From: Magallana gigas
Lineage: Eukaryota
Length of the DNA stretch: 64,000 bases
Assembly: GCF_963853765.1 (NCBI RefSeq)
Contig: NC_088859.1
Coordinates: 26,474,001-26,538,000 of the forward strand
Direction of reading: 5' to 3'
Of the stretch, positions 8,944 to 44,267 are shown piece by piece. Made by a program: the position numbers and the translations under genes. The stretch's first letter is position 1. Every line of letters begins with the position of its first letter. Under the pieces are notes generated by a model. The model was not told the DNA's origin, ran no database searches, and saw only the letters and a list, made by a program, of their open reading frames with translations.

Positions 8944-8994
<51 letters not shown>

Positions 8995-11900: not shown

Positions 11901-12443
11901 AATGTAATGTGTAATGTAATGTAAAATGTAATGTGAAATACTTGTAGCCCCTATGTTTATAGCATAGCAATTCGGTTGTTATAAGTACAACGTTTCACTT
12001 AACAATTACGTCAGCTCATCCCATAACGTTCCTTATACTCAAAAGTTACACATTGTTCTAACATCCCCAGTTTTATTTGGCGTTTCATCACTTGACAAAT
12101 GCAATCAAAATCATCAAGTACGGTGACAAACTTTGTTACAAAAAGTGAGTGACAAAAGTGAGTATAACAAATAAAAAAAAATCTGTAAAAAAAGATATCT
12201 CCGGCGACACCATCCCTCAATTGAAATCCCATTTGTAATTAACTGAGGAAAACAGAAAGATTCATGGGTGCGTCATTTCCCATCATACAATAAAATTACC
12301 GTCATTTAAATATTTTGTAACGACCAACGTAGCTTTACTACGTCGCCATGTATTCGCACCTGTAAAAAAAGTTACGGACTATGATGACATCATTTCCGGG
12401 GTTTTCAAACAGCAATTTCATGCAATGTTTGTGGCAAATGATC

Positions 12444-12493
<50 letters not shown>

Positions 12494-15400
12494 TTTAAAC
12501 GATATATATATATATAGGAATTTAACTTTTTTGTTATCACAAATGGTATTTGATGCCTTTGATGAAATGTTTATAATTTAGTGTTTATCAGATATTACAT
12601 ACATTTTCTTTAATTAAAAAGAAATCTTTTCATTTCGGAATACCACACATTAATTTTGTTTCTAAACCATTCGTAAGATAACTTATCTGCAACATAGAGG
12701 CAGAGACGCTCTTGTTTAATGTTCACATCAAGAAAAAAACTGTTTATTTGACATTTCCTTGCATTAACCTGTCGGGTAATGTTTCCAATCTCAATTTGCT
12801 CTGCGTATTCCATCGGCACGGGTCTACAGAAATTACAGTGCATGCACGTTTACTTAAAACGACCATTTGTCAAAATATTGCCAACCATTACAGAAATTGC
12901 AAAGTGCATGTTGTACTTTTAATTCAATCGTATATTGTTAATTCAAGACATTAATCAACAAATCGATTAATTCATAAAATAAAAACGCACTACATGATAT
13001 TTTTCTTCGCTGCTAAATTTAAGCATTGGCTTCTTTAAGAGTACCAACGGTGGTAAGAAGTATCCCGTTCTGTTTTTTGTCCATGGTGGATCATACTTTA
13101 ACGGGATGGGAGCCATGTTTGAAGGGAGCATGCTGTCGGCTTCCGGAATCGTGGTTGTAACCATAAACTACAGACTAGGACCACTCGGTGAGTTACACTT
13201 AATACATGCTTTGTACATTTCACTATCGACGAGACTAGGTTAAACATTTTTCATTTGAAACATTAATTAAAAACTATTTCACAAAGTTAATGACGAATGT
13301 CTCTGTTTCATAGGTTTTTTGGTGTCCGGTGACCCGGAACTCTCAGGGAATTATGGGATGATGGATATGGTTGCTGCTCTGTGGTGGGTGCGCCGGAATA
13401 TCGAGTTCTTTAACGGGGACCCAAACCAAGTAACACTGATGGGTCACAGCGCAGGAGGCTGTAGTGTCGGCTTTCTTGTTATGTCACCTTTGACAAAAGG
13501 TAGTCTTCAGACTATTGTTCTTGTTGTGTGATTTCCGGTTGACAAAATTGACTCGATATACGTCAGTGGTTTTCCTGCTTTGTTTAACTTGTTCTGGATG
13601 TGATCGTTGCTATTTCTGCTGCTGTTGTTGTTGTTGCTACTGTTGTTGCTGCTGCTGCTTTTTATTGNNNNNNNNNNNNNNNNNNNNNNNNNNNNNNNNN
13701 NNNNNNNNNNNNNNNNNNNNNNNNNNNNNNNNNNNNNNNNNNNNNNNNNNNNNNNNNNNNNNNNNNNNNNNNNNNNNNNNNNNNNNNNNNNNNNNNNNNN
13801 NNNNNNNNNNNNNNNNNNNNNNNNNNNNNNNNNNNNNNNNNNNNNNNNNNNNNNNNNNNNNNNNNNNNNNNNNNNNNNNNNNNNNNNNNNNNNNNNNNNN
13901 NNNNNNNNNNNNNNNNNNNNNNNNNNNNNNNNNNTAGATGTTGTTGAAGGACCATCGTGGTTGTTGAGATGGTTGCAACAACTGAGTTCTTGTTGATTTT
14001 TGTTTTAGAATTATTATTTGCCCATCTATCGATGATAAGTGTCTACGACATGTACAGTTAAAAAATACCGCCAATTAATATTTTTTGTTCGGAAATTGTT
14101 TTCTGCTATTTTGCGTATTTGTTAAAAGTGTGTTTGATATTCGATATATGAGCACGATCTTCTAAATGCCCGATTCGCGTGCTTTGTGACCTTTTTAATG
14201 ATAAGTGTATTTAATTACATGCCGCCAGAAGGCGGTCGGTTATATGATATGAAAGTAAAAATTAGTTGTGCGTGTCTGCGGTACTATTGTGAGTCTGGTG
14301 CAACCATAGACTTTATCTACGCAACGCAGCTTTGCTTAGAGAGAGCGTGTGATTGAACCAATCTTAAAATTGTTATTCTAAAAAATATTTTAAAAATAAA
14401 ATATTATATGTTTTACGGTTTAGCCGTGGGGGCAAGAGCAGCAGGAGTTACATATATGTACACTATATTCACTTATCAAATGTGTATTTCGTCAAACAAA
14501 ACAAACTTCAAGTACAATAATTTTGCTTTTAATTGTTTTTTTTTAGTACCATCAAATAAGTGACAATTATATACAATGTATCATTAAATTAAGAAAAATT
14601 GGACATATCCTAAATTATTTTCAAGTCAAATTCGATGCACCCCATCCACTCCCGGTTATCGAGGAAGTTCGCCGCCCCGATACAAAGTACCTTCCGACGC
14701 CGCTGTATAAGCAAAAGTGTTCTATTTGTTAGATTTTACTGTTAAATTTATTCTTATTTTTCCTGATTTTTTAAAATCGTTTTTGCAAAACTGTAGTTGT
14801 AGAATCTAGGATCCCTTCATATTCAATACACGTTTAATACAATATGCATGTGCACATATATGTTGATTTGCGCTTTGTCCATTTGTCTGTGAGTTGATTT
14901 TTAATGTAATGCACAAACTCGAATTTCAAATATTTCTTGTTCAGAAAAACAAATGGTTTGCTAACGTTCTCTCGACGCTTATTTTTTTTTTATTATTATA
15001 AGATCACCTGCAAAGTTTATACTTTTAAAAATCTATAATCAGATAAAAGGGATTAAACTCATTTTATTTATACATCGGGAGTAGATCATTTTGTTCAAAG
15101 TACAATGACCCATCTGATAACATTTCCGACATACACGAAAATCCCTTTTAAGTAGGCGTTTAAACAAGGAGAAAAAACTGTCAAAATTAAATATCATACA
15201 ATAAACAACTAATATTAAATAAGATATGATGAAAAACTAGGCTAATCTAATTCAACGGGAAATTCAATCACTTTTCAATTACTTGAATGACTGCTTCTGC
15301 GATTGATAAAATACGTCATATCTTTAAATGAAATAGAAGTAGGCGATAAAAACATTCAATCTAATGAGTACAGGCAATTTTCGCGTGCTGCGCTCAGCAA

Positions 15401-18400
15401 TTCCGAAAACTGTTGAAGCCGAATTCGATGTGTCATGGTCGTTGTTATCGGCCTTTTTGTGTGTAAATAACGGTATCTCCTGATGTTTTTAAGACCTCTG
15501 CCATTTTGATTACTGTCATAATATAAAAGTCTGTAACATGTTTCCTGTCAGAAATAGGTGATATTTTAGTGTTAATAGGTGAGCACTTTGAATATGGATG
15601 AAACTGAATACCGGGAAATCTGCTTGGTACATGTATAATAGATGTCTTCTTCAAGGGCACAGATAAACGGCGTTTTTATTTATATAAATATTATAAAAAA
15701 GTTTCAAAGCTAATATAATCAAACGAAGGTTATTTTCGATGCAGAGAAAGATAAAACTGGTTAAGATTGCATTTTGTTCGAATTTTGATAAAACGTTAAC
15801 ATAGTATTCAAAGAATTTCAAACAATAATTTTATGTAAGGATTCTCTGGTTTCAATGCTAAATGAATTTTTTTTAAAATTATATATTTTATGAATAACTT
15901 ACAAGACATATAATAAGTAGATTACAAGACATATAATAAGTAGATATAATATATTACGAATTATTGCCAACAATTGCCAAAACGTGGCATAAATTGATAC
16001 AGATTTCGACATTCTCGGGAGATTAAATTTCATCAAAGGTTAGCGAGTTCGCATCACCTACACAGTATTACAGAGAACTGATGCTTCAGTTTATCAAAAT
16101 GCTACTGCAGAGATTTTTAATTTTTAATGCAACGATAGTGAAAAACGTTCTGGGTTATCTCGACACTACCTTTGTATAGATATAAAGAGATATCCAGTTA
16201 ATGCAATGATAATCCAGAGTAGATTTGGTGATAAAGATTCCATTTGATTGGGTGTTGTGAAGTCGGCTAATTCATGTTATATATATTCTTTCTCACTGCA
16301 GATGTTGTTTATCAAATCGATGCAGCTTTTTTTTTATGGATTTAGGCTGTTAATACTTTAAGAAGTTGTACATTGAATTTCCAGCAATTCTGCGATCATA
16401 GTTTGATTGCGCAAGAAGGGGCTTCAATTTTGAGATCATTTAGAATTATTTAGAGATGAAATATAAAATAAAAAAAAGATATGAAATATTTTGCTCAGAT
16501 GTTTTTCTCAGAAGGCAGTTTAATGTAAGAAATGTCTCAAGCTGCAAAACCTTTGAATATGTCGATTATTGAAAATGAAGCAATATGAATGTATCATTGT
16601 TTAAATTTGGCACTAATTGTGCAAGGAAAAAATAAGAATAGGCACACCTTATGTTATACATATGTTGCAGGGTTGTTCCGGAGAGTCATAATCCAGAGCG
16701 GGTCCCCCCTTGCACAATGGAGTTACTCGGATAAAGTGACTTCTCCGGACATCCACTTCAAGATCTTTGTCTCTTCCATTGGGTGTCTTCGGAACAGCTC
16801 TAGACTCATCAAAGAATGTCTGCAGAACATACCTACCGAAGTCATGCATAGACAAATTGCGTTTAAATATGTGGTAGGTCGCACAGATATAAATATATAT
16901 TCTTAGACGAGTATTTAAAAAAATATTCTTGTGGCAATTGATGTTGAGCATATTTCCGTTCTGATGAAAATTTCTACAAGATTTGTTTACATACAACCAT
17001 AAATAAACGTTAATGTCGAGTCTTGAGATCAAACATTTTTCCTCTTCGAAAATTCTTAGGCAAACTTATCCTCTAAGCATAACTCATAGGAATTACAGCG
17101 TTTTTCCATATTTAACCCCCCCCCCCTCCCGAGAAATTCATAGCAGACAGAGGTGTTACATGTACATCGCCGGAAATAAACGGCCAATCAATGCCAGACT
17201 GTGTGTTTCGAACGATGACATCATATTTTCTGTAAATCAAATGGCAAGCAATGCAGCAGACTTGTTTTTGAACGATTTGACATTTTGTTAACATATATTT
17301 TTTCTACCACACGCAAAGAATGTCAATATTTATCAAGGTCATAAACAAAACATATACATAATGAGAATCATCCCTTTCTTCCTCAAATGAGATTTTTCTG
17401 AAATGATAGTTATTTTCTAAATCATAAACATGAATTATAATTTAGGAAAAATAGTTTCATTAGATTTTGTCAAGAGCAATCATTCGACAAAAATCGACTT
17501 AAAACTGAAAAAAAAAATACAAAGTAATAATTGCTATTTTGGAATCCAAGTAAGAGTTGTCTCTCTTATACAAAAGATCGATGAACCTTAAAGAGATGTA
17601 TAAAATGTCTCCTTCCTTGTCAATTTCAGACGTCTCCGTCCCTGACGCCGCAGTTCCGCCCGGTGGTGGACGGGTACGTACTTCCGGATACACCGGAGAG
17701 ATTGATACAATCCGGGGCATTCCGAGCGGAGAGCGTGATGACTGGCGCCACGTCAGACGAGGGGCTTATTGCAGGTAGTCAGCTTACAATATCAAGGATT
17801 CATTGTTTAGTTTATCGTAAGTTTTCCATTATTTGCGTTTGCAGTGGGAGGGGGACTCCCTAACAGTCTGATATAAATGTAATGCATATTTTCCAGCAAA
17901 ACCACTGGTGGAATTATTTGGTGGAGAGGAAAAAGGCATCAAACAGTTAATAACACTGATGTATTGTTTCCGCGGAGATTTGCCAAACCTGGCCAATATC
18001 GTGGGTACGCAAAATTTGTTTGGTTTTTTTTTTCAGTTGAAAAGTATTGGTCGTTATTTATGCATCGGATTTAATCCAAGGTTCGACCACAAAACTGAAA
18101 CAAAGTAACTTTTTGATTGAAAGTTTTCTTTCCTCAATGAATTTCTTCGACTGATATATAAAACAAACTAGACTTTCTCTATCAATAAGAGCACGTGAGT
18201 CATTCATATCCTATCACTTTTAAAAATTGTAATATTTGCTCTACTTTTAGACATGGTGATCGATACCTATGCATCACTGCCACTTGAGGAAAAAGAGCAT
18301 TTGGTGGAGGAAATCTTCTCTGACGTAAGCCTGTTTAATTATTCGGAAGTACCAAAGCAGTGTACTGCTTTGGAATCATTTTTATCATGCATCCAGTGAC

Positions 18401-20996
18401 ATTAGCGGTATTCAAAACTGGGAGATCAGTAACACATATCAAAAGTTGAAATAACTCGGATGAGTTTTTGAAAAAAAGACTTAAAAATTAGAAAAAAAAT
18501 CTATATTTACGTCTTATTCAATCTCATGATCAAGCTATCCCAATTTAGATAATCGGTTTTAAAACAAATGAAAAGAAATTCTACAGACATTTTCGATACG
18601 TACACTTAACCGTTAATGACGTCATCGTTTCAGATTGTTGGTGACTACTACATCACAGCGCCCACACATAAACTGGCCCAGATGATGTCATCACGCAGTG
18701 TTCCAGTCTACCTCTATAACTATGAGTACCAGTCCAAATACGCCCAGTGGGAAGGTATACTAGTAGTGATATGCATAATTACTAGAGATTCTCATCATCA
18801 GTTGTATAAATCATTGATATTTATCGTGATTTTGTCAATTTAAACAATAAAATGCTCTCTTTGATGATTCATGCGGGATATGAAGGTGGCAATATTGCAG
18901 AAAAAATAAAAACCCGCGTTAGCGGGTTATGTAAATTTTTGTTCTGCAATGATCGCTACTTTTATAACCCGCGTGAATTTAATTATCAAAGAAAGCATTA
19001 TGTTGTTTATTTTTACATCTTTCTTTTAACAAATTAATAATTTCATTGTAAAAAGTAAGTAAAATTCACTAAATTACTGTAAATGTATATACATCAGTAC
19101 GTTAGCTAAAAGAAACAGCCAAATCGTCTCTCATTGGAATTTAATTCTGGTATCATCATGATTATTTCGTGAAGTCCGTGATTTTTCTTAGGTCGCTGTT
19201 GGTTTCGACCAATCGATAAATGGGGCGTGTAGATTTCAGTCCTGTCAGTTTTTACAACTGTTCTATAGAGCTATGAATTAACTTTAAGTTCCGTAAGAAA
19301 TAGAGGGAATCATACTCGGTAAATGTAAATATGTATTTATCATAACTTCCAGCTAGCGTTTATGTATAAAGATGCAACAGTTTTCAAAACTGTTTAAATA
19401 TAAAGCAACACATGTGCATTGCGATCTTTGAGTGTCCATATAAGGACTAAATATACTCAATGTTTGCGCTAGATATTGTATTAATTAGCAAATAGAATCC
19501 CTTGAACGTAAACAAAATTGTCTAGGTGTAAAGTGATAATTATCTCATACCAACATGCAATATTTTATTAAGAGCAAATTACAAATTCTAGGCTGGCCGC
19601 AACAGACGTTTTTAAAAGTAGAATTACCACGTGTGTAAGTCGACAAACCATTCACAATTATACACGCTCCAATTTACTTCCTTTTTCAGGAGTCACCCAC
19701 GGATCTGAAATCTTCTACCTCTCAGGATTCCCCATGTCCGGTCACTCAAATTTTAGATACGATGATACCGACAAGAAAATGGCCACATTGCTCATTCATA
19801 TGTGGGCAAACTTTGTGTATAATGGGTAAGAACAAACACAAACAAACAAACAAAAAAGAAATATCGTTTATCATGAAAAAAACCATAAAAAGTAAATTCA
19901 ATACGATATAGTACTCTGTGTTTGAAAGGCGGTATGACTAATGTTATCATACTCCTCGTCAGGTTGTATTTCATTTCCAGGATTAAGCTCAGAGATATTA
20001 AATATATCAATCCTGGTCCTTTTCTCTTCAGATATTTTTTTTTAATTTCCCGTGATGTGTGTATGTGTGGGCAGGGGGTCTCAAAAGTAATGTGATAGTA
20101 TTTATTTTTGCACTTCCCTTTTCTGTCTTTTGACAAGCAGCTTTATACCGTAATATTGGAATTTTTGGTACGCAACTAGCATAATCTCATCCTTTTATTG
20201 TAAGGGTGAAGCATTTCAAACACGGTTTAAATTTCAATTGCATCACTTAATCCTGAAACTACGCAAGAAGATGTTCGTATCCTTTTTAATAATATATTTA
20301 ATATTTTTAATATAAAGTGCGTAAAAGTTGTAAAATTGTAAAATGTGTGAAATAGAGTATTTTTATTATTCGTGTGAGAAAAAACAATTTATATTTTCTC
20401 CGTATTTGACCATCATACCACGCAGACAGCTGTCAGTGAATAACTTTATCAAATTTTTACCGGATTTTTGCATAAAGCCACCATTAGACTTTGTAAAGAA
20501 ATTGAGTAACACAGAATTCTCATTTGTTGCTAATCTTGTATTTATTTATTTGTTTATTTTGGGTTTTTTAAATTGCAGACTTCCATCATTGGTTCCTCAC
20601 AGACAATTCCATATGGATCGATACAGTGTTAACAATCCCGTATACACTAAAATCTATCAGGGAATAAACCGACCCTTTGTTGAACTGTCCACAAATTACA
20701 AAACTCGAAAACTGGACTTCTGGAACTACAAAATCCCAATGTATTCTGGGAAATTAGATTCTGGTGACGTCATACAAAGTCCAGTGCAAAGGACACACAC
20801 AGTGACCGGCCCCGATCATTGGGCATTAATCGCCACTTCTATTGGACTTGCGGGCCTCGCAATGTTTTTAGCGGTTGGATATTGTAAAACTAAAATTCAA
20901 CTACAAAATCTTCACCGCCAACATGGCGTTTGCATAGCCGGGGAAATCTCCAGTAAAGACATTAAGAAGTCCAAGTATTTCAAAACTAACGTTTGA
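702..20996 (+). CDS. Type-B carboxylesterase/cholinesterase-family, neuroligin-like type I membrane protein (~637 aa, 11 coding exons)
   Basis: Exons 702-914, 5788-5949, 13040-13187, 13314-13499, 16671-16873, 17630-17774, 17897-18004, 18251-18324, 18634-18754, 19690-19825, 20579-20996. All introns are GT-AG with consistent phases; total 1914 nt. Motifs: signal peptide, YGRVRG, FLGVPYASPP, SEDCLYLNIY, FVHGGSY, VTINYRLGPLGFL, NYGMMD, GDPNQVTLMGHSAGG, QSG, PVVDG, DEG, HGSE, WANF. C-terminal TM helix (WALIATSIGLAGLAMFLAVGYC) and tail ending KTNV. Confidence 0.9.
3011..3060. repeat. (CT)n microsatellite
   Basis: Directly visible. Confidence 0.95.
3564..3695. other. Assembly gap (132 N)
   Basis: Run of N. 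Confidence 1.
8947..8992. repeat. (CT)n microsatellite
   Basis: Directly visible. Confidence 0.95.
10084..10213 (+). repeat. Short direct duplication (~54 bp, period 75)
   Basis: CAATTTCCTATCATTCAATTTT..ATCTATCTTT at 10084 and 10159. Confidence 0.8.
11431..11748 (+). repeat. Tandem duplication, 2 x 159 bp
   Basis: The unit starting AAAACATAAGACTTAAACCCGC occurs at 11431 and 11590 with few substitutions. Confidence 0.9.
11832..11935 (+). repeat. (AATGT)n/(TAATGTAATGTG)n minisatellite
   Basis: Directly visible. Confidence 0.85.
12447..12490. repeat. (GA)n microsatellite
   Basis: Directly visible. Confidence 0.95.
13668..13934. other. Assembly gap (267 N) next to a (GTT/GCT)n tract
   Basis: Run of N preceded by a trinucleotide repeat at ~13615-13660. 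Confidence 1.
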
Positions 20997-21516: not shown

Positions 21517-24436
21517 CTATCCATGAATAGCATTTCCATTAATACTGAGTCTATGCACTGACACAAAATGGTCGTAGCCGCTTTCTATAATAACTCTCAG
21601 GTGATTGGCTCTTTTATTATTTAATGGAAATTCTTCTTGTTGGAGAGTATTGTCTGTAGCATCAAATTCTAAAAATGAAAAAAAAAATATCCAAAAACTC
21701 TTTACAAAATTACTAAAGTATGGAATTTTCCAAAACCTTAAGGGGCCGGGTGGTTAAAATCTACGCATCAGACATGTCTTCAACTTTTTAAAAAATATGA
21801 TATTTTTGGCTGTAAATTATTATTAAGGAAGGAAAAATTCAAATATTTTGGCTTTAAAATTTGAATATTTTTCGATATCATTATACAAAGCTCTTTGTCT
21901 ATTGGAGGTTGATTTAGCCTACAAATGGCCAGGACCATTTTGCCTTCCTAAAAGAGCTGTACCTCTTTTAATTCTGAAGATTTTGCTATCAAAGAAGTGA
22001 AATGTCCATTATGAAATTGTTTGTGATTGTTGCTTGCACATGTAAGTACATGTAGCATGAAGAATTGCTTTTAATCATTTAGCAAAGACTCTGTGATTAG
22101 TTTTATTAAAACATTTTAAAGATAAGGAAATTTAAAAGCAGATTCATTGCAGTGTACCAAATGTCAAACTGAAGAAAAAGATCCTTCATTTCTGTCAAAA
22201 TTGACTGATATGTTGAATAAAACAGTGTTTTATAGTGCTTTTTATCTTCATGAAAATCTCTTGTGGGGTATTTTTAAACAGTTTTGAAATGTTTAAAATA
22301 TCAGAATTAAGTCCACCAAATTTAGTCACTTTATGGAAAATGCACTCAAAATTATATGATTACACTATTAAATTTTCAAAATATTTTAAACACTGATTGC
22401 AAAGCTTTAAAGATTTTTTGCATGAAATATGAAATGTACCAACCTTTGTCTAACAGATCTTCAAAATTTAATGGCTCATTTTCTTTGCTAGTTTGAAACG
22501 ATAATTTCTTCACTGAAAAAAAAACATGACTACACAGATAAAAAGTTTTGTATTCTGAGTAATTCCCAATTGCAGCAGTGTTGGGGGTCATTTCTATGAC
22601 AATTTATTTAAAATTGTGCATCTGGGGCTAAAACATATCTGCTAAAATAAAATATCTTTACAGTATAAACTTAAAAATTAAGAGGCTTTGACATAATTAT
22701 ATGTATATGCATATATCAGTGTTTTCTAAATTACACTGGCCAGTACTTTAATTTCATATTTAAATTAGTCAAATACTTAATTAATAGGAGTATGTTGACC
22801 TTCAGAAGGGAGGTGATTATTGTCAGTTAAAACATTTATATATATACAAAAAAGTATTTATTTCTTGCAATTCTTATGAAAGAAGCAGAAAAGATTATAG
22901 TGATACATGATGTGAATTTATACACCAGTAAAGGAGTCAATATTGAGGAAGTACATTATTTACAAAATAACCTGTACATACCATTAAAACATGCAATTTC
23001 AATTCGCTGTATACTCATCATGGAGGAAAATGTAACAATGAATTCTTGTGGAAACAGACCAGTTGATGCCCAAAATGTCTCCTGATCCCTAAAAATAAAA
23101 GCAAATTGTTATGTTAAACACAAAAAAAGATATAAAAAAAGCTATTAGATTACGAACATTATATAAAGAGCAGGGTACGTGTGTGGGATTACTTGTTCCA
23201 AGTACCAAATTACATTCGGTGAGCTACAACATCGAGGTAATGCTACCATAAACTCCAAAATCTTAATTAAATCCGCCAGGCTGCCACAAAATCTTTTGTC
23301 CCAAAGATTCAAATCAATGGTAGAAAGTTATAAAATGCAAGTAATAATACCATGATTCAAACTTTGGCTAGTAAGCCCCCTAAACTATAGACAGGTGCCT
23401 CATCATTTGAGACAGCTGGTATTCTACCAACTGAGACATCTGAACTACTGTAAATTCATTATTTTAATGTGAGGTCTTAATTCCACGATTCCACTGTTTT
23501 GTATCAAATCATGAGAATATAAAATTGAGAGTACCAGTTTTTTGGTTATAATTTCATATAATTCAAAACTGTCTGAAAAATTTAGCCAGGTTAAAAAATC
23601 TGCAATTGTTGCTTCTCACAATTTTATGTGGATATTATTTCCTTGCATTTAATAAGGAATCCCCAGTATATGTTCACCAACAAACAAACCTGCTTGATAG
23701 CCACTTTAAAGCTCAGGGCTGTTATTCCATTGTCCCTAACATTCAATTACATGGCTTGAATGGTCTTGCAGAAATGTTAACCTTTTAAGTAACAGATCTA
23801 AAGACTGTTTATCATTCCAAATGTAATAGTAAGGGAGAAAAGGACAAAAATACTTAAACTTTAGACAGGTGCTCTATCAAACCATTTGCATGACAACTGC
23901 ATACATGCATGGTAAAAGAAATATATATCCTAGTAAACAAATGTACCAAGGCCAACTGACACACACTGATCAAGATATCCTGGCCAATATCATATCTAAA
24001 TCAAAGATTCTAAATTGTTAACTATTTTCTAAATTTAACAAACATATGCTATACGCTATATTAAGTAAACTTTGAGGATTGACCCTCACAAAATTTAAAC
24101 GTTCTGTATGCCCATGCAAGACTTCCACAAACTTATCTTCTTTTCAAATACAATAGTTTGTAATTAGCCGAAAATGTCAATCAAGGCGATAAGTTTGAAT
24201 AAGCCATTCAGTAAATAAAAACTTCGTTTAAATGAAATAATGTGCATAATTCTTTGTACCAAAAGTTGAAACATTTATTATACAATAGACGTTATTCCAT
24301 TGATTTACTGAATAAGAAACAATATGTTTATTATTAAACCATACCCATCGATGATATTTTCAGGTGGATGATTACCATCACTAGAAGTAGCAAGAACAAC
24401 CTGGGCACCGGCGCTTTTCAGAGCAACATCAAACAT
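21517..24436 (-). CDS. IFT25: Intraflagellar transport protein 25 / HSPB11 homolog (139 aa, 4 coding exons)
   Basis: Minus-strand exons 24436-24345, 23088-22982, 22512-22444, 21668-21517 (420 nt, phases consistent). Translation MFDVALKSAGAQVVLATSSDGNHPPENIIDGDQETFWASTGLFPQEFIV...ESGYDHFVSVHRLSING matches human HSPB11 as recalled (LATSSDEKHPPENIIDG, TFWTTTGMFPQEF, DHFASVH). Confidence 0.93.
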
Positions 24437-24964
24437 TTTTGAAGAATTTCTTGGCGTTGATGGCAACAAAATATTTAATCAACGTTATTTGGACGCTTAA
24501 AATATTATGAATAGTAGAAACAAAAACCGTAAGTTTTTTCCGTTATAAATTATATGATATAAAATTATTAAATCCACATCATCTATTTCATATATATTTT
24601 TCACAAATATTACATTATTTTTATTTTCAATATTTTTAACGAAAATTACTTTAACAATTAAATTTTCGACTTGCTGTGTATGATATTCCGGCTATATAAT
24701 ATTCTATCGTAAAGTGTTTTTTTTTATAAAACCATTTGGCGCCATATTTCAATCCACTGGGTGTTGATTGTTTGTAGCAATCTCAGATCAATGGTTCAGA
24801 GGCCCTTTTAGGTAAATCACTGCGAATTATTAAAATAATAGCGAGATTGGCTTTCGATTTTTTAATTTATGTTTCGTTTCAATCACAATATCTCATTATG
24901 TATTCAAAGCTTTATAAGGATGGATAACACTAAGGATGTCATCGATTGATTTCAATTAATTAGT
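24437..24964. promoter_or_regulatory. Putative bidirectional promoter / 5'UTR region between IFT25 and LRRC42
   Basis: Divergent ATGs are 528 bp apart. YY1-like CGCCATATT at 24740-24748. A possible LRRC42 5'UTR intron runs from a donor near 24812 to the AG at 24962-24963 just before the ATG. Confidence 0.6.
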
Positions 24965-27900
24965 ATGGAAAGACCAACAAAGATCAGAAAAACAAAGAAC
25001 ACAGATGAACACAGTTGGGAGGTTAGATCACCAGTATCGCTGTATCATCGATGCATTCAATATATTGCTCAAAATCTACACATGGTGGACAGTTTTTACG
25101 GGTTTCCTGACTTGGTGGCAGCTGATATTTTTAAGGAATCAGAGAAGTGCAAGAAATTTGAGATCACTTCAGCAGAAAACGATTCTCTCAAAAACCTTCA
25201 ATTGTTTTGTGAAATTTATCCAGACAGCGTGCTGTCCAGCCTAAATCTATCGGCCTCCTGTCGAGCGTTGAACTACTGGCTGGAACACTTTCTGGTTTTT
25301 TCTGGACTACAATCACTAGATGTGTCTGATTGTTTCCTTGGAGACGAGCATGAAATCTTATCCCATATTGCACATTTAAAACTGTAAGGAGCTTAAAGCA
25401 GAATTTGCTACTTAAAGCGTGTATGAATGGCATAATTTGATATCGGTATCTGTGAAATGTTAAACTAATTACAGCAATTTTGGTATATCAATGGCATAAT
25501 AGTTCTATTTTGATATCTGTGTCTGTGAAATGTTAAATTAATGAGAGCAATTTTGGTAAAATAAGGAAAAAGTAAGCTAAATGTAGAAAATATTTTGTTT
25601 TTTCATGTTTTGAATGATCTTCTTTTTATTGCAGCTTAAAAAGCTTAAACCTTAGGAAAAACTGTCTGACGGATAAAGGGGTTTCTAGATTTTGTGCACC
25701 ATTTAAACTATTTAGAAGAGGACCAGAACATTTAACAGTTCTAGATGTGTCAGGTATTACATTGTACTTTTATAATGTTATAATACCTATGTTAGGCCAT
25801 GTATTAAAATATTTGTAAGTCATCTTAAAATACATAACCAATCTCAGACTCTATTCGATGCATGTTTACAAGTCTAAGAATCATTTTTCAATTTCTCTTG
25901 AAACAACTCTAAATGATAATAAGGGACCAGATCTGGGGGGGGGGGGGGGGGCTCTGTTTGTCTGCCATCATTTCAACCAGAGTGCTTTCAGTAAAGAGTA
26001 TATGAAGTGGCTTGAACCAAGTTCGCGGTCAAAGGTTGAGGTTGCTGCAGACCTTTGAGGAAATTTTTTTTAAAATATATTCCATTCACTACATTCCCAG
26101 AATGCTTTTGTCTAAAGAATATGCAATGTCCTTGAACAAAGTTTCGAAGTAAAAAAATAAGTTCATTTTAGCCATCTTTGAAAAATTCGTGTTTATACCA
26201 TTTGCATTATATGTTTTCTCCCTTTATCTGGCTCTTACTCCACATAAAAGAATGCTTGTGAGTAAAGAATGTGAAATGACCTTAAATTAAGTTTGTAGGT
26301 CAAAGGTAAAGGTCATAACAGATGTTCTTAAAATCAACATCTTGACCAAAATTTCTCTTCTCTTGGCAAAATCTTGCCCATACTTTACAAAAGATTGCCT
26401 GTAGGTAAGGAATGTGAAGTGACCAAGATATAAGTCAAGGTCATAACAGACATTTGCCAAAATTCAGGTAAGGAATGTGAAGTGACCAAGATATAAGTCA
26501 AGGTCATAACAGACATTTGCCAAAATTCAAATTGTCTAAACAATATTCTTCTCTCTACTTGGCCAAATTATGCCCTGCCCCAGTCTTTACCTAAAGAGTA
26601 AAAACTGGCAGTAACCTTCAATTAGGTTTTCCTATTTTGACCTTATTATTTCTTCCAATGGCCTTACCTGTCTTGCACTACATTCATAGTGTACTTGTTG
26701 AATAAAGAAAATTTTAAATTTAAATTTATTTCAATGTCAGAGGTTAAGGCCAAAGCAAAGTCCTCTAAATCGATTGCTTTTCAACCAAATGTTCTTTATT
26801 AAAACAGAGTTTATTGAGATGTGGTAACCATATACTTATACATTTTCCAGTGTCTTTTTCTGTGATAACACTACAAATCAACTTTGTAATGTATAGTCCA
26901 ATACATTTCATCTATGACTATTTTAATATCTAATCGTACTACTGCTGAAAATTATATAAATATACTGGTAAGTAAAAAGAAATCATTCTTTGAATATCAT
27001 AAGGTCAAATCGGTCGTGAATCATCAAATCTATCATAAAGCCCTTCAAGCTATATTGGATTTGATCAATCCTGACTGTATTTGAATACCTCATAATACTC
27101 CAAGAATGATTTCTTATTCCTTAATATTAAAATCGATGATGACTAGTTTCAGTAAATGTAGTGTTTAATAGGTAAAACTGCAGTAAATTTCATTGTGTTT
27201 CGATAATCCAAGTGTGCTTAGCGTTGCATTTTCATTTCTTTCTTATAAAACAGAAAATGGATGCATATCAAATAGAGGAATCAAAATGCTACAGTGCTTC
27301 AAAGATTTACAAAAAGTAGATATTACTGGAACCAGTGTTAAGGTAAATTCTTGTACAGAATTGTTTTTCCAGAACTTATCAAATAGAAATAAATTCATTA
27401 AGAATTGCAATGTTTGCAGCAAGTGTCAACAGAATATCAATTGTTGTTTCATCTGTGTAAGCTTCCGCTATTTTCATGTGAACTCCAAAATAAAGTTAAG
27501 GATTTTTGATATCATATTTAACCTTGTACCTGTATAAATTTTAATGGTATAATTGCAATATATGCACAAGGTAGCTAATTGAAAGTATATTGAAATAAGA
27601 AAAGTCAACCAAATGGAAGCAAATGGTGGCCATCCGTTTTGGACATATTTACCTGAATGAAAGTACTGTAAAGAAATGAATTGAATTTTAATCTTTTTCA
27701 GGTTAAAGAAATATCCAATGATTGGAAAGTCCTTCCAGAGAAGGGAGAGGGCTTAATGTCTATAAAAAATGAAGGATGGGCCTCCCATGTAGTCTGCAAG
27801 TGGATGGAATTGGCAACTCGGACACGTGACAAGGATGAACACAAAACGTCAAAGTTTTGTATGTTTTTAAACTATACGTAGTAGTAGTACATGTATCACA

Positions 27901-28280
27901 AAATAGAAAGATTTAACAATCTTAATTTTCATAGGATAATTCTGCTATATTATTAAAAATATATAGCCCTCTCACAATCCTATTTATATAAATTTTTTTG
28001 GGGGAGGGGGGGGATAACCTAAAATCGAAGAAAGCTACGTTTCAGCCTTTATTTCATAAATAATACGTTTACTTTTTACTTTGTAGATGCAATAAAGAAA
28101 CGAATCAAAAGCCGAATCAGCGTACAGAATGTGAGCAAAGTGTCATTTGTTCCACAATACAGACTGGTGCTTCATCGAATTCATCATCTGAAGAAAGTGA
28201 CAGCACCTTGTGTCAAAATTCCCACACTGACTGAACAAGATAATAATATGGATGCAATAATGAACTTATACAAACCTTAA
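24965..28280 (+). CDS. LRRC42: Leucine-rich repeat-containing protein 42 homolog (~325 aa, 5 coding exons)
   Basis: Exons 24965-25383, 25635-25753, 27254-27342, 27702-27858, 28087-28280 (978 nt). Motifs matching human LRRC42 as recalled: VDSFYGFPD, LDVSDCFLGDEHEILSHI, LNLRKNCLTDKGV, LTVLDVS, VDITGT, KNEGWASHVVCKW. Confidence 0.88.
25920..26760 (+). repeat. Degenerate satellite-like array in LRRC42 intron 2, including a perfect 63-bp tandem duplication
   Basis: Recurrent GACCTT..AAGGTCA/GAACCAAGTT motifs. 26403-26465 is identical to 26466-26528. Confidence 0.55.
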
Positions 28281-31045: not shown

Positions 31046-34000
31046 TCAAGACCTGTGAAAGAAAAAAGAGTCCAAATTTAATCAATTTTTCATAAACAAA
31101 ATCAACTTTGGCTCATTTTACCCTTTCCAAACATTTCATAACTAATTAAACACCAAATTCAATTTCAAAGATTGACAGCTCTGAATATTTAAAGCTGCTT
31201 GGTCCGATTTTTTTGTAATTACAGTATCAAATTTTTTTTCATACAAATCATATATCTTAGAAAGTTATGGACTTTCTCCTATTTACACCAGCAGAATCAG
31301 TCTCCTTTCAAAGTTAGAAATATTCAAAGTAAATAAAAATAATTTCTCTTTTGGCAAACGAAAAAACAAACCAAAATGCATCACGGGAATGTTTAGAAAA
31401 GGAAACTGAATGGTTTCGCCCCCCGAATGATTGGGGTTATTCAACCCGCATGCCATGCATCGATTGTAAAGAAAGCAGACTTTATAAATATTGGCTAACA
31501 GAACGTACACATGTTTATTTGTAATTTGTTTGATCATTTCGACCTTTATTTAAAGCGATGTCAAATTCGTAATACAACCATTCCCGTTTCGTCGTCAGGG
31601 GTGAAATTTAACATGAGGCGAAATAACGCGGTACCTTTTAATGTCGTTTGTTTTGTTAGCAAATTTTGTACGTATTTTTCTTCATTGAAATTTGGCATAA
31701 TTGACGGGTAAAACTACTGCAATGTCTATTATTATACATATACTAAGCATAGCCATCGTTTAAAAGCGTGCATAAAATTTGATATAAAATCGGACCAAGC
31801 AGCTTTAAAAGTTGTGTGCCGGTAATAAGGCATTATTTGATAGTTTAACAACCAGATATGAACATGTCCAAAACACATTCATCTATTCCAATATAAATTT
31901 AAACTCAAATTTCTCTTGAATGTAAAATGCATGTGTTACATCCATTAATCTGCATTTCCCACATGCTAGAGGTTGAATTCCTCTCTTTTATATCAAACCT
32001 TGACCGCCGTGATCTTCGCCTGTCTCGTGACCTTGACCTGCTCCTTGACCTTCTCCTTACAGGTGACCTAGATCTAAAATAAGGTAAAACAGTACTTGAT
32101 GATAGGGTGCTCTTACTTGAGAATTGTAGACAGCAGTGTATAATTAAATAAAACATAAAATGACATCTTATCAATAATGCAGAGTCATGTATTTTTTATT
32201 TCATATAAAAAGAAAAGACTTAAATTCATAATCCTCCTATCCTTTTGTTCACCTACATTTCACCATTGGTGAAAAACTAAAAGAGTAAAAGCTGGAATGT
32301 TTGAAAACAGATCATCCAAGTCTCCACTAACTTTAACTAACTAACATGTATTGTGTAAAAAACAACAATGCTGTTATAAAAACTTTTGTTGAAAAACTGT
32401 GTAAAATAAAAAATTCAATTACCCGTACACCATACTGAAAAATGACCAAAAAAATGATAACGACCTTTTCTTGACCCATACCAAGGTGATACCCTGTGTC
32501 ACCCGTTACCTTGACCTAGACCGTCTTCTCTTGTCACTACGGGATCTAGACCGGGATCTGGAGCTTGAACGGGATCGAGATCTGGATGACCTAGATGATC
32601 TGGAGGAGGAGGAGCCAGACGAGCCAGACGAAGAACTTCTGGATCTGGATTTGGCAGAGGTTTTAGTGTTTTCTTCATCATCATCACTTGCACCAAGATC
32701 ATATGCACCTAAGTCACCATCTTCATCATCATCCTCCTCTTCATCTTCATCATCATCATCCTGAGTAATAATTTCTTGTTTTTTAAGATACTATTACATT
32801 TCACATACCTGTTTATCTACATCTCCAAGAATTTGGTCTTTTTTTTTTATACAACTGTTGGAGAAGATTGCAATTCCAAATCCAAAATCTCATATCTTTT
32901 AATTAAAAACAGAAGGACCAAATGAATCTTGTAAAAGATCCACCTAAATCTAAGTAAATAATAAGTAACTGTACATTCATCCTTGATATAAACTATAAAA
33001 TATTGTGTTCAACTACTCTCAATATACACGTAAATATGTGTATAAAAATACCCTAGACTTGGTCTTGTCTACAGATGCATATTAATATACCCATCTTACT
33101 AAAATAAGGTTTATAGGGGTTACATACATCCTGCCTTGGTGGTGCTGGGGGTGGGGGGTTTGGTGGGCCTTGGGGCGCAGCTTTCTCCTCCGTGGACCCT
33201 CTGAATTTCTTCCTCTTCCTTCCAAACTAACAAGACAAATATCCAGACCTTAATTCATCTTCTTTAAGTTACAATGAACTGAAAATTCTTAGTGACAAAC
33301 TTTTGCTTCATTACGCTAACCTACTTCATCAGATTTCTCCTATTAATAGGTATATTTTGCTTCATTACACGAATTAAATGCATCAGACTGATACATTTGG
33401 GTACTTTTATTTCCAAATCAGAATGATTACCAGTAACGTCAATAAAAACAATTTTTCCAACCTCATCATATTCATCGTCATCTTCTTCGATTCTCTCCTT
33501 GTACTCTACAATTTCATCCCGTTCCATAAAACCACCGCCAAATCCTTTAATAGATGAAAACTTGTTCTAAAACGGAATCTCATTTCATAATTTGAAAAAA
33601 ATTCATAATTTGAAAAAATACATATCCCATTTCCCAACATAATTGTAATTTTTGTGAAATAGATACAATAATTCACTCAAATCAGACATGATAATTGCTT
33701 GTGGTGAAAGGAGAGAGTTAAACTATGAGGAGTTGCAAAAATACAAGATGATGATATTGATTCCCTATTTTCTTTCATGGACAAGGAAAATATTGTCATC
33801 CAGTCATTATTTAGGTATATTTCACCCTAATAAAGCTTGAATACCGGTTATATCTCTTTATATTCCTTAGTGAGGATGTTTAGCAACTTATGGAATCAAT
33901 TATGAAAATGATTTTCGCCTGTCTAGTCAAAGCAGGCTTGAAATTTTCTCATTGTTATCAGTATCAAAGAATTGTGTGCTCCAGATTTAAAATTTAAATG

Positions 34001-37000
34001 AGCTCAGTTCAAGACCAAGAAGTTTTTTCATTAAAAGGATTACCAAAATGGTTATCTTACAAAACAAAACAGATTTTGTGGGAAAACAATAAACTTTTTG
34101 AACAAAGGCAGGAGGTAAGAGAGCATGTTAAATAGTGGCAGACTTCTGCATGAAGTGGAGTTAACATGTATGCTGCATGCTCAACAAGAACTTTCTTTCA
34201 TTATGGGAGATACTCTATATCAATAAATTAGCAATAATCACTTTTGTTGCTTGGTTCAATACTAACCAGTTCTTTGCTCCTGTTTTCCATATTTAGGTGC
34301 ATTGCAAACATTGCATGTCATTCGTCTTGCCCAGTTGACATTAGCACAGCTGTTAAAAGATTGTAAATAATTGTGCTAATTCCTCTCTGATCAAAAACTA
34401 ATAAATTTGCATGAATACAATAAAAATCAAGAAAAACAAGACTTTCTGAAACACTTGAGACATATTTTTATATGGCAACCATATTTTTATAAACAGTATA
34501 ATAAACGTGTCCTTATAAAAGTACTTTTTAATTTGTTGCACAATAATGATTGACAACAAAATTACACAGTCATTGAGTTGAAAAGGGCATTTTTTTTTCT
34601 ATTTCTAAAACCGTGATATCTGTTTAAAGAGTACACATATCGGTTATGATTTGGTCATACACTCTTACCTCTTACACTGCCAGTCATCGGCACTGAACAA
34701 CCCTTTACTTTTCTCTGCTAACTGCTTGCCTATTTCTGTACCACCCTTCTTGAATACAGTTCCATCTTTCCTTTCTGTTTGCAAGAATAAAAATCATTTA
34801 GTTGATATATCAAAGCATACTTGGACAATGTTGAAGCGAAGTGAAATTAAAAAAAAAATTCAAACATAAATTATATAGACAACCAGAATCTCTGTTTCTA
34901 TTAAAAGGTATTTTTAGTAATATTTAAACAATCTATATCATATCAAGAGAAAAGCTGTCAATGTGACATCAAGCTTGTGTTCTCTTTTGTGTGAAAAGTA
35001 TCCATAATCCATTTGTCAACCCAAACTATGGGGTACTCTACGTCCAATTTTTTTGCAAAAAAATGACGAAGTTCAACAGCAGGTATTTTTACAAAAATAA
35101 TCAAAATCCAAGTAGTACGCACATCTCTAATATATACGGTACATATGATTGATCTGCAAAACAACAATTTGCTATCTTGGAAGCTGTACGAGGAGTTATC
35201 CATACGATAGGGTTACCCTATATGCAATATAACGCAAAAAAAATAATGATGTTCAACAACTGTTATTTTTTCATAAATTATTAAAAACCAAAATCCAAGT
35301 AATTTGCACATCTCTAATATATATGAATGATCGATCTACAAAACAACAACTTCTATCTTGAAAGCTGAAGGAGAAGTTATCCTTACAATAGGGGTACCCC
35401 TTATGCAATATTGTGGAGAAACAAAAATGACAAAGTTGAACTGAGGTATTTTTTTTCATAAACTATCAAAAATCAAAATCCAAGTAAATGCACAATCTCT
35501 GATAAATGTACAATTGATCTGCAAAACTCTTCCTATATTGAAAACTGGAGGAGGAGTTATCTGTACAAATGGGGTACCCTTTTGGCAGCCGGCCGCCCGA
35601 CCACCCACCATTTTTATTTCAATAGCCGAATCTTTCCTTTTAAAAACCCAGTTTAAAATTGATTGAAGGATGAAAAGGTTTCATGACAGATTCATCCTGT
35701 GCATATCAATCAAACAATATTGAAGAGTGAAGACACACATTATCATTGCCAAATAGAGCAGGTGGAAAATACTAGTACATTTGTTTAGAACTAGCGTGAT
35801 CACTGAATAATACTTAGTCATGGGTAAGACTATAACTGGCAATATCAATTATCTCAAAAATATAGACAGATAAATCCCAAGTAGTTGACAAGTAAATAAA
35901 TGATACAACAATTTCTCCAAGTATTGACCAAGTGATCTATATTAAGATCCATGACCTTTTGACCCACAAAACATGTAATCAATAGTTATAAAAGCCTTTA
36001 CTTTTCTCTGCTGATTGGTTGCCAGTATCTGTCCCGCCTTTCTTGTATACAATTCCTTCTTTCCTGTCTGTTTATACGAATGCAAATTTTTCAGTTCATG
36101 ACATGCAACTGGCATTAAAGTACAGTGTAAATAAGCATCTGCCTCAAAATCTTATTGGGAATGAATTTTAATATAAACCATGTACCAGGTACATGTACTT
36201 GTATTTCATACCTTAAAGGGTAAAATTCAAATAAAATAACTTCATTACAACTCAGTTGGGATTATCAATGAAGTTTCAAAATTAAAAGGATATATTACAT
36301 TCACATCTATGCAGTATAAAGTTTACATTCATGAGTTGCAAAATGGAGACAGGCAGTACTTAATTTAAGTCCATTATTACCGGTAGTTATGTAGTGTACC
36401 AGTAGTCATTAGAACACATTTACACTATTTATCTTACAGAGTAAAAAAACATCATCAAAACGGGAGGAGAAGTTTGTTTGACTACACAACATTCATAATT
36501 GTAACAGTGTTCAATTTCAGACATTAACTTTTCTTTTCTTTTTTTTTTTAATTCATTGTGATGCAGTTTGTAGTGCATATCTTTATATATTTTTGAACAA
36601 ACACTGTTGCAATTACACCTTGGAACAGTAATCCATTTGTATTCATTTCCAAATTCAAACAACTGTACTTACCTTTACCACAGCGATTGCATTCATTTCT
36701 TCTTGAAAAATTAACATTTCCACATCTTCATAAAATAAGAAGAAAAAAAAAGCATTAATAATTATTTGTAATACACTTGACACATCAACATTATCTCAAT
36801 TGAAAGAGTCCAACTAGGTGAAGAAAGCATATAAAAGACAGCCGATATGCAGCATTATCCAACAGCAACATATTCGTATTTCATAATTCATATTTGTCTA
36901 TGTAAATGAAGTAAAGGCAAAGGAATAATTAAACACTAAAATCCATGGATAAGTTAACCTGTATGGTTTGCAACATTGTGCAGGCTGGGACCAATCACCC

Positions 37001-37712
37001 AAACGGGATATAATAGCCCGTTTGGGATATACTGAGGGATCAATCTCCGCAATAGTTAATCCGAGATTCCTCCTACTCTAACCCATACTTTTATAATGTG
37101 ACGTACACATGCATGTCACAATATAAAAACGGGGGTTAGAGTTGGAGGAATCTAAGAATATATTAAAGTAAGGTTACAGAAAAAGTCATTTACCACAAGT
37201 TGTTACATTTCATCTATTCTAATGTGGATTTACCATATTTTTTGCAAAATTAACAACTTCTATCTTTTGCACTTTATATTTACATCCCATTTGGGATATT
37301 ATATCCCAAACTGGCTGTCATATCCCCATTTAGGCGATTGGTCCCCACCTGTTGTGCAATGAGAAATATAAAAATATAACCTAATAAAATGTGTAAAAAA
37401 TCATTTTATTTAGACCGCAAGGATAAAAGCATTTTAAGAGCATTCTAAGAACTTTAATAATTATTATATATCAACTCTATGTTCGCCTTGGCGAACGCTG
37501 ATAGCTGCTGGAAAGGGGGTACAAGGGAGGTAATTCTAGGGTGTGATCATTCGTCTGTTGTGGCATTCCAAAAATAATTGCTATTACATTGAGCATAAAC
37601 TATTTACATTGAAACCACATCATTTAATGATTTATTTTGCTTACTTTGGGTCTGGGCAGACCCAATCGCCCTCATTTGGCTTGAATTTTCCACTCCCTGT
37701 GCCACTCGACAT
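31046..37712 (-). CDS. ZRANB2: Zinc finger Ran-binding domain-containing protein 2 (SR-like splicing factor, ~274 aa, 9 coding exons)
   Basis: Minus-strand exons 37712-37645, 36725-36673, 34774-34669, 34349-34267, 33544-33462, 33226-33128, 32760-32510, 32073-31999, 31052-31046 (825 nt). Two RanBP2 zinc fingers ([50 protein letters not shown]), GGGFMERDEIVEY, an acidic tract and an RS domain. The last 7-nt coding exon is the least certain. Confidence 0.92.
34944..35658. mobile_element. HINE/Helentron-like non-autonomous element with a ~186-bp x3 tandem core (ZRANB2 intron 2)
   Basis: CAAAATCCAAGTA recurs at ~35102, 35289 and 35474. The array is followed by a tetranucleotide-like GCCGGCCGCCCGACCACCC tract and a terminal AAACCCAGTTTAAAA, the layout of bivalve satellite-bearing Helentron derivatives. 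Confidence 0.65.
35979..36067 (-). pseudogene. Degenerate duplicate of ZRANB2 exon 3 ending in an in-frame stop
   Basis: A CAG acceptor at 36070-36068 precedes (D)RKEGIVYKKGGTDTGNQSAEKSKGFYNY*. The functional exon 3 reads (E)RKDGTVFKKGGTEIGKQLAEKSKGLFSADDWQCK. Confidence 0.8.
36981..37351. mobile_element. MITE with ~50-bp imperfect TIRs and an internal hairpin (ZRANB2 intron 1)
   Basis: CAGGCTGGGACCAATCACCCAAACGGGATAT pairs with the reverse complement of the right end (CAGGTGGGGACCAATCGCCTAAATGGGGATAT). Flanked by the direct repeat TTGTG. An internal inverted repeat lies at ~37065-37152. Confidence 0.65.
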
Positions 37713-38157
37713 TGCAGATTGCAGCAATGAGGGAACGCAACGCACACTTCAATAACTTTTACTTTGAAATATTCGTTGCTATCAATAATTTTCCATAGAT
37801 AAAGAAAATTTGAAAATTTGAAAATAATATATGATACATTACAGTCTGAAGTATAACTTAATTGCAAAAAGACACTCAAAAGGCTCTAAATTATTCCAAT
37901 TTACATTGAAACGAATATATAAAGAACGAGTTGTTTTTCAAATTGAAACTTCGTCAAAGTCATTCATATGTTTATGCATAACTAATTAAATAGACAAGAA
38001 ATATGTACAGAATCTACATTGACAAGATCAGCTGATAAACAAGTGCGAGCGCGAGCAGGTGACCGTGCGAGCAGGAACCAAGTGCTCAAGTAAATTTAAC
38101 ATGATTTCGTGAAGAAAATAAAGAGAAAATATTCGATATTTTTTTGCATAACCAATT
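37713..38157. promoter_or_regulatory. Putative bidirectional promoter between ZRANB2 and ERMP1
   Basis: Divergent start codons are only 445 bp apart, with CpG/GC-richer patches near 37700-37750 and 38040-38080. Confidence 0.6.

Positions 38158-44194: not shown

Positions 44195-44267
<73 letters not shown>

Follow-up and report, generated by a model that had tools for sequence, protein, structure and literature searches.

IFT25 (HSPB11) and LRRC42 form a divergent gene pair in the Magallana gigas genome, with IFT25 on the (-) strand and LRRC42 on the (+) strand. It is probable that the two genes are orthologues of IFT25 and LRRC42 and that the pair goes back to the protostome-deuterostome ancestor or further; the oyster spacer between them may carry two functional elements within interleaved promoters. 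The locus offers a clean, well-supported divergent pair older than the protostome-deuterostome split, and the conserved footprints in the oyster spacer are two short candidate promoter elements open to testing. IFT25 is a subunit of the intraflagellar-transport B (IFT-B) complex, where members of its family bind IFT27. To our knowledge LRRC42 has been little studied and no molecular function has been established for it, and the fact that it has so long been paired with an IFT-B subunit offers a usable lead on that function.

The analysis covered a stretch of 64,000 nucleotides, referred to as the window, which contains runs of N at 3564-3695 and 13668-13934. An earlier note on this DNA had described IFT25 and LRRC42 start codons diverging 528 bp apart; hand-built gene models and RNA contigs agree with that arrangement exactly.

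21517-24436, (-) strand: IFT25/HSPB11 coding sequence, four exons, 139 aa, all introns GT-AG, hand-built from translation and splice sites
24436-24345, 23088-22982, 22512-22444 and 21668-21517 (stop included), (-) strand: IFT25 exons
24437-24486, (-) strand: minimum IFT25 5'UTR, the extent of RNA contigs (to 24471 in X1, to 24486 in X7)
24437-24964: spacer between the start codons, 528 bp, 26.7% G+C, CpG observed/expected 1.59
24918-24964, (+) strand: minimum LRRC42 5'UTR; contigs begin at 24918 in X1 and at 24924 in X7 and continue unbroken into the coding exon
24965-28280, (+) strand: LRRC42 coding sequence, five exons, 325 aa, all introns GT-AG, hand-built
24965-25383, 25635-25753, 27254-27342, 27702-27858 and 28087-28280 (stop included), (+) strand: LRRC42 exons

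RNA contigs contain the IFT25 joints 22512/22982 and 23087/24344 (two runs), and a loose contig end at 22444 bears letters of exon 4. All four LRRC42 introns are seen as joints, and the LRRC42 model is 99.1% identical to transcript-derived P0152 across 325 aa.

The gene names given in the earlier note hold up against PDB matches, fold matches and named relatives. PDB searches with IFT25 exon 2 matched 1TVG (human HSPB11; E 6.9e-7) and 2YC2 (Chlamydomonas IFT25; E 8.1e-5), and exon 4 also matched 1TVG (E 5.6e-5). Pfam recognised no domain in single IFT25 exons because these are too short, and PF00754 (F5/8 type C) is found in the whole orthologues that lie beside LRRC42 in Mytilus, Lottia, Lineus, Saccostrea, Branchiostoma and Bombina. 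The predicted protein, of ~140 aa and a single domain, has human HSPB11 and Chlamydomonas IFT25 as its nearest relatives of solved structure, as is characteristic of the family, and its gene is single-copy in a genome search. IFT25 is absent from Drosophila and C. elegans (PMC9226691).

LRRC42 is an RNI/FBXL-like leucine-rich-repeat protein, in which Pfam detects LRR_6 in exon 2 and nothing more. When the AlphaFold model of an oyster LRRC42-like protein was compared with Swiss-Prot using Foldseek, the best seven matches were all LRRC42 (mouse, cow, rat, two Xenopus species, human and zebrafish; E 2e-25 to 3e-22, TM 0.69-0.70), and the next family was LRRC73/FBXL (E 1e-5, TM 0.3). The conserved N-terminal exon matched 93 representatives at E<=1e-10; these relatives span phyla, and nearly all looked-up representatives with an informative name are called LRRC42. 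An alignment query across animals gave 21 matches, with a millipede and Solemya newly added. Within the oyster genome, exon 1 matches its own locus only, indicating a single orthologue.

Transcription of IFT25 and LRRC42 diverges from a compact region that retains CpG. The 5' ends of their RNAs (24486 and 24918) lie at most 431 bp apart, the contig ends being minimum transcript extents rather than transcription start sites. The CpG observed/expected ratio peaks over the spacer, against a window median of 0.62 and values of 0-0.6 in 500-bp bins within both gene bodies, first exons avoided. Contig depth is alike for both genes (~50-67 in X1 and 46-60 in X7), although it is a poor measure of expression; raw reads of runs X21 and X22 reach a depth of ~0-8 at the locus and are mostly partial matches. 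By the usual definition, the genes of a bidirectional promoter pair diverge from start sites <1 kb apart, and YY1/E2F-like motifs are reported to be enriched in bidirectional promoters. The oyster pair resembles such pairs in its divergent genes, in the distances between its start codons and between its contig ends, in its retained CpG and in a YY1/E2F-like motif. Unlike a classical CpG island, however, the spacer is AT-rich (27% G+C), and in most other species compared it exceeds the 1 kb of the definition.

Order and orientation were surveyed in 12 species including this oyster, with vertebrates represented by the locus of the frog Bombina. The genes are divergent in seven of them, with the following distances between start codons.

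This window: 528 bp
Saccostrea: 1468 bp
Mytilus: 2179 bp
Lottia: 1014 bp
Lineus (Nemertea): 9254 bp
Branchiostoma: 443 bp
Bombina: ~2314 bp

In Bombina, a gene on the (-) strand for a 139-aa F5/8-type-C protein lies directly upstream of LRRC42 (+); the order is that of the oyster, but the spacer is ~2.3 kb and the flanking genes differ. The oyster pair is flanked by a carboxylesterase gene on one side and by ZRANB2-ERMP1 on the other, and IFT25-LRRC42-ZRANB2-ERMP1 is collinear between this oyster and Lottia. Since the divergent pair occurs in Mollusca, Nemertea, Cephalochordata and a tetrapod, common descent is indicated rather than convergence, and its presence in molluscs, nemertean, amphioxus and frog dates it to the protostome-deuterostome ancestor or earlier. 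Descent of the pair from the bilaterian ancestor, judged from these gene orders, is therefore well supported. Lingula, Glandiceps, Diadema, Priapulus and Nematostella (5/12) showed no IFT25 closer than 10 kb to LRRC42, and the linkage is therefore dispensable. The earlier note had also suggested that the pair may have been kept since the bilaterian ancestor under a shared promoter constraint. The first part stands, but the second remains at most an inference: spacer length varies ~20-fold (443 bp to 9.3 kb), the motifs appear specific to oysters, and the genes are not adjacent in the five species named.

Much of this history has been described. Yasuoka et al. (Mol Biol Evol 2020; PMC6984359) reported a bilaterian glis1/3-rfx3-ndc1-hspb11-lrrc42 "ciliogenic cluster" with its genes within 100-600 kb, linkage of hspb11 and lrrc42 in human, amphioxus, octopus and brachiopod, and the vertebrate order yipf1-dio1-hspb11-lrrc42-ldlrad1, and suggested a ciliary role for the cluster. 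In Nematostella they found only glis1/3 and lrrc42 to neighbour each other; our comparison reproduces these neighbours, with a GLI-type zinc-finger gene directly upstream of LRRC42. In this oyster, by contrast, the cluster is not confined to 100-600 kb but is dispersed along one chromosome. The best matches all lie on chromosome-scale C7: glis1/3-like at 3.414 Mb, NDC1 at 3.441 Mb, RFX at 16.38 Mb (the best RFX match, a candidate rfx3 orthologue) and the pair at 26.50 Mb. The glis1/3-like gene and NDC1 are 27 kb apart; with the members at such distant positions, only IFT25-LRRC42 has stayed joined in this oyster, and no other part of the published cluster is as tightly linked. That paper thus already gives the conserved linkage, dates it to bilaterians and puts forward the ciliary hypothesis, and the present finding accordingly adds little as a discovery. 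Its modest additions are the dispersal of the cluster in this oyster, two oyster spacer blocks and the four-gene collinearity with Lottia. Neither head-to-head orientation nor a common promoter is described in the abstract and microsynteny section of PMC6984359, and a literature search found nothing joining LRRC42 with 'bidirectional promoter' or 'head-to-head'.

Alignment with Saccostrea revealed two identical blocks in the spacer.

24452-24476: 25-nt block, identical in Saccostrea, in the IFT25 5'UTR
24456-24467, (-) strand: X-box-like site GTTGCCATCAAC, one mismatch from GTNRCC-N0-RGYAAC, inside the 25-nt block
24734-24752: 19-nt block, identical in Saccostrea, mid-spacer
24735-24742: E2F-like TTTGGCGC, in the 19-nt block, overlapping the YY1-like GCCATATT
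24741-24748: YY1-like GCCATATT, in the 19-nt block (CGCCATATT from 24740)

The names X-box, E2F and YY1 denote consensus matches only. Both blocks are longer than the longest exact word common to the two oyster spacers in shuffles (mean 11.4, maximum 16), and 0.04 X-box-like sites are expected per shuffle. In the two oysters the 19-nt block is 299 and 288 bp away from the start codon of IFT25; a 15-mer from it occurs 10 times in the genome and its reversed control not at all. The YY1-like motif that the earlier note had seen between the genes is present. Taken alone it is near chance (found in ~5% of spacer shuffles and 13 times in the window), and it carries weight because it lies inside the 19-nt block. 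The spacers of Mytilus, Lottia, Branchiostoma and Lineus yielded no X-box (<=1 mismatch), no E2F TTTSGCGC, and no GGCGCCAT or related core words; GCCATNTT gave only scattered short matches there, at chance level. Among the spacers compared, both blocks thus appear to be oyster-specific.

The first of the two putative elements would be an X-box-like site of RFX type, located in the IFT25 5'UTR or next to it, which is what a ciliary gene would be expected to have, and the second a central E2F/YY1-like element. Adjacency may persist because the two promoters and nearby regulatory DNA interleave, so that most breakpoints would harm one gene or the other. That the genes are neighbours gives in itself no ground for proposing that their proteins bind each other.

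The pair could instead be a neutral relic of two independent abutting promoters. Genomes that rearrange slowly (molluscs, nemerteans, amphioxus, vertebrates) would then have retained it passively, since few breaks within so short a spacer are harmless, and not through any mutual need of the two genes; we hold this reading to be plausible at somewhat less than even chances. It agrees with the five species in which the pair is broken or >10 kb apart and LRRC42 is kept, with oyster footprints that lie one near each gene and form no single shared core, and with the lack of a motif common beyond oysters. The neighbouring divergent ZRANB2-ERMP1 is also kept in Lottia and Lingula, with no known functional link. 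Adjacency and orientation nevertheless survive spacers of 2-9 kb (Mytilus, Bombina, Lineus), ample for neutral breakpoints, and the oyster pair has held together longer than the other members of the cluster.

Combining the reading of the earlier note with the functional idea put forward for the cluster (PMC6984359), one shared bidirectional promoter could co-express both genes in ciliated cells, with LRRC42 itself related to cilia or Hedgehog. The proximity of the RNA 5' ends, the CpG-retaining island across the spacer, the X-box-like site conserved between oyster genera, the similar contig depths (with the reservation made above) and the proposed ciliary role all fit such a promoter. Yet a literature search found no experiment that links LRRC42 to cilia, a fold search of LRRC42 returned only generic RNI/FBXL-like LRR matches, the X-box-like site is on the IFT25 side within the transcribed 5' end of that gene, and the spacer motifs are not conserved outside oysters. 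We therefore consider a shared promoter unlikely. Doubtful to a slightly greater degree is the bolder proposition that the old cluster has an indivisible core in the divergent pair, kept for >500 million years by interleaved promoter DNA because LRRC42 works in the cilium/Hedgehog-trafficking pathway of IFT25 and has to be expressed together with it; if true, LRRC42 would be given its first function by its genomic partner.

Misidentification of HSPB11 and LRRC42, or independent origins of their adjacency, is extremely improbable and effectively refuted: Pfam is silent on the short IFT25 exons and reports only LRR_6 in LRRC42 exon 2, but the PDB and fold matches, the named relatives and the single copy of each gene speak for orthology, order and orientation are common to the four groups named above, and two given genes would be neighbours by chance with a probability on the order of 1 in 10,000 per lineage, estimated for an animal genome of ~20,000 genes.

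The sequence AGGTAA occurs in Saccostrea at an offset roughly matching that of AG|GTAAAT (~24811) in this oyster, which had prompted the idea of a non-coding LRRC42 first exon that starts near the 19-nt block and ends at that site. The RNA contigs show no corresponding joint and continue unbroken from 24918 to the start codon, so such an exon finds no support in them; a rare LRRC42 isoform with an upstream non-coding exon may exist.

Two divergently transcribed genes, IFT25 (HSPB11) and LRRC42, were modelled by hand from six reading frames and splice sites, with GT-AG boundaries at every intron.

Coding exons of the divergent pair
24436-24345, 23088-22982, 22512-22444, 21668-21517; minus strand; IFT25, 4 exons, 139 aa
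24965-25383, 25635-25753, 27254-27342, 27702-27858, 28087-28280; plus strand; LRRC42, 5 exons, 325 aa

The 528 bp that the earlier note gave between the two start codons is exact (24437-24964), and the outer limits given there, 21517 and 28280, coincide with the stop codons of IFT25 and LRRC42. Every predicted intron was seen as a joint in RNA contigs of two runs, the support for the last IFT25 intron being a loose contig end at 22444 that bears exon-4 letters. IFT25 RNA reaches at least 24486 and LRRC42 RNA starts at or before 24918, both being contig ends, with raw reads too sparse for start sites; the untranscribed gap is therefore at most 431 bp. Each gene is single copy in a search of the whole assembly (564 Mb, 29 contigs), of which the window covers C7:26474001-26538000. 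The genes are thus expressed, divergent and single-copy, with closely spaced 5' ends, and, as the survey below demonstrates, they have been inherited as a pair.

Across LRRC42 exon 1 (24918-25383), the contigs of both RNA runs depart from the window sequence at 9-16 positions in 343-460 nt (∼3%), a level consistent with high polymorphism in oysters or with RNA from a sister species. LRRC42 intron 2 holds a 65-bp tandem duplication (26402-26531). It is probably a length polymorphism, because a jump of precisely 65 bp (26465 to 26531) occurs in one RNA contig and in several raw reads. Two intronic stretches, 23443-23581 and 26930-27127, show high RNA-contig depth on both strands, with reads continuing into unrelated sequence at each edge; these stretches probably represent dispersed repeats that are transcribed at other loci, rather than exons of IFT25 or LRRC42.

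The closest named relatives of the window proteins are from oysters (Saccostrea, Ostrea). IFT25 exons, searched singly, match human HSPB11 (PDB 1TVG; E 6.9e-7 and 5.6e-5) and also Chlamydomonas IFT25 (PDB 2YC2, 8RUY). Across its whole length, LRRC42 shares 99.1% identity with P0152, a protein derived from a transcript. Its exon 1 retrieved 93 representatives at E<=1e-10; names were checked for 30, and all were LRRC42 except four unnamed transcript/ENA clusters and one 'hypothetical protein'. LRRC42-named relatives occur in molluscs and other protostomes (Lottia, Mytilus, Haliotis, Lingula, Lineus, Priapulus) and in Glandiceps, sea urchins, crinoids, a starfish, amphioxus, tunicates, fishes, amphibians and Nematostella. 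An AlphaFold model of the oyster LRRC42-like protein (pLDDT 82) had reviewed LRRC42 proteins as its best seven Swiss-Prot matches (E 1e-22 to 1e-25, TM 0.69-0.70), the next family following at E 1e-5; among solved structures it matched only generic RNI/FBXL/NLR-type LRR folds.

The LRRC42 locus ± 10 kb of eleven other species, twelve species in all, was searched with the oyster IFT25 model (tblastn).

Species with IFT25 directly upstream of LRRC42 on the opposite strand, and ATG-to-ATG distance
This oyster; 528 bp
Saccostrea; 1468 bp
Mytilus; 2179 bp
Lottia; 1014 bp
Branchiostoma; 443 bp
Lineus; 9254 bp, no gene called between
Bombina (frog; gene table only); about 2314 bp

IFT25 was absent within 10 kb of LRRC42 in Lingula, Glandiceps, Diadema, Priapulus and Nematostella; in Nematostella the upstream neighbour of LRRC42 is a GLI-type zinc-finger gene. 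IFT25 is missing from Drosophila and C. elegans (PMC9226691). The order and orientation of the two genes thus recur across four phyla, in protostomes and deuterostomes alike, which leaves shared ancestry as the only reasonable reading; a convergent origin is for practical purposes ruled out. The bilaterian ancestry proposed in the earlier note is thus right, but not new, since the linkage is already in print (PMC6984359).

Yasuoka et al. (Mol Biol Evol 2020, PMC6984359) describe glis1/3, rfx3, ndc1, hspb11 and lrrc42 as clustered in most bilaterians, in a span of 100-600 kb; human, amphioxus, octopus and brachiopod keep the cluster almost intact, and the vertebrate order is yipf1-dio1-hspb11-lrrc42-ldlrad1. 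They suggest a possible role of the cluster in ciliogenesis, in which LRRC42 might act as a transcriptional co-factor, and report two of the five genes lost in Drosophila; in the sections consulted there is no mention of head-to-head orientation or a common promoter. No paper linking LRRC42 to a bidirectional promoter or a head-to-head pair turned up in literature searches. In contrast to the published cluster, the five genes of this oyster are dispersed along one chromosome, contig C7: the best glis1/3-like match lies at 3,414,094 (71% identity to the Nematostella gene adjoining LRRC42), the sole NDC1 match 27 kb away at 3,440,890 (region G000:C7:3414094-3441006), the best RFX match at 16.38 Mb, and IFT25-LRRC42 at 26.50 Mb. 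The pair is the unit of the cluster that survived here.

The glis1/3-like and NDC1 half is likewise still joined. On another chromosome (G000:C8:31657647-31737142), three GLI/GLIS/ZIC-type zinc-finger matches stand in tandem, 19-80 kb from an RFX DNA-binding-domain match (E 1.9e-17), and each shares 44-45% identity with the glis1/3 fingers of Nematostella; by these matches the stretch appears to be a second RFX and GLI-superfamily neighbourhood.

The spacer is AT-rich (26.7% G+C) and has kept its CpG, with an observed/expected ratio of 1.59; the window median is 0.62, and the IFT25 and LRRC42 gene bodies give 0-0.6 (500-bp bins away from first exons). Retention of this kind typically marks an unmethylated promoter where gene bodies are methylated. 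Compared with the orthologous 1468-bp spacer of Saccostrea, it is unalignable apart from two exact common blocks; in shuffled spacers the longest exact common word averages 11.4 (maximum 16).

Spacer blocks identical in Saccostrea (motifs are consensus matches only)
24452-24476; 25 nt; X-box-like on the IFT25 strand, inside the IFT25 5'UTR just upstream of the ATG
24734-24752; 19 nt; E2F-like TTTGGCGC overlapping YY1-like GCCATATT

The X-box-like site GTTGCCATCAAC has one mismatch to GTNRCC-N0-RGYAAC; a shuffled spacer is expected to contain 0.04 sites that match this consensus as well. The second block lies 299 bp from the IFT25 ATG here and 288 bp in Saccostrea, and its 15-mer has 10 genomic occurrences, compared with 0 for a reversed control. 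The YY1-like motif of the earlier note is present (24741-24748) but unremarkable alone (∼5% of spacer shuffles, 13 times in the window); it gains weight because it falls in this block. Neither block nor motif was found in the Mytilus, Lottia, Branchiostoma or Lineus spacers. Both blocks are concrete candidate promoter elements in oysters.

Two explanations for the persistence of the pair have roughly equal odds. Under interleaved cis-regulation, the predicted RFX-type site would serve the ciliary gene IFT25 and the predicted central E2F/YY1-like element IFT25, LRRC42 or both; the promoters and the regulatory sequences near them would overlap, so that separating the two genes would be costly. 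Two findings speak against purely passive retention: adjacency holds even at spacers of 2-9 kb, and the pair outlasted the rest of the cluster in this oyster. Three speak against a strict form of the shared-promoter constraint suggested in the earlier note: spacer length varies 20-fold, the motifs are lineage-specific, and five lineages keep LRRC42 without IFT25 beside it. That LRRC42 has a genuine, co-regulated function in cilia seems rather unlikely.

The gene order in the window is carboxylesterase(+), IFT25(-), LRRC42(+), ZRANB2(-), ERMP1(+), collinear with Lottia from IFT25 onward and with Lingula from LRRC42 onward.

Other genes in the window
675-19900; plus strand; multi-exon carboxylesterase (COesterase), downstream of the IFT25 3' end
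31990-37697 (exons, approximate; within 31900-46400); minus strand; ZRANB2
from about 38152; plus strand; ERMP1, Peptidase_M28 and ERMP1-TM matches
59424-61208; minus strand; intronless 595-aa ORF, two B-box zinc fingers, C-terminal half beta-propeller-like

The IFT25-LRRC42-ZRANB2-ERMP1 block is common to this oyster and Lottia, where LRRC42 and ZRANB2 are separated by one further annotated gene of 124 aa, and Saccostrea has the carboxylesterase neighbour in the same orientation. ZRANB2 and ERMP1 (31900-46400) are a second pair arranged head to head, with about 0.5 kb between them; the pair also follows LRRC42 in Lottia and Lingula, whereas the region downstream of LRRC42 in Branchiostoma showed no such pair. 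One ZRANB2 exon is present in two minus-strand copies (34662-34793 and 35985-36086), both of which align to a single exon in Lottia, Lingula and Saccostrea; identity to Lottia is 86% for the first and about 52% for the second. The ORF at 59424-61208 looks like a TRIM-like gene, a class expanded in bivalves.
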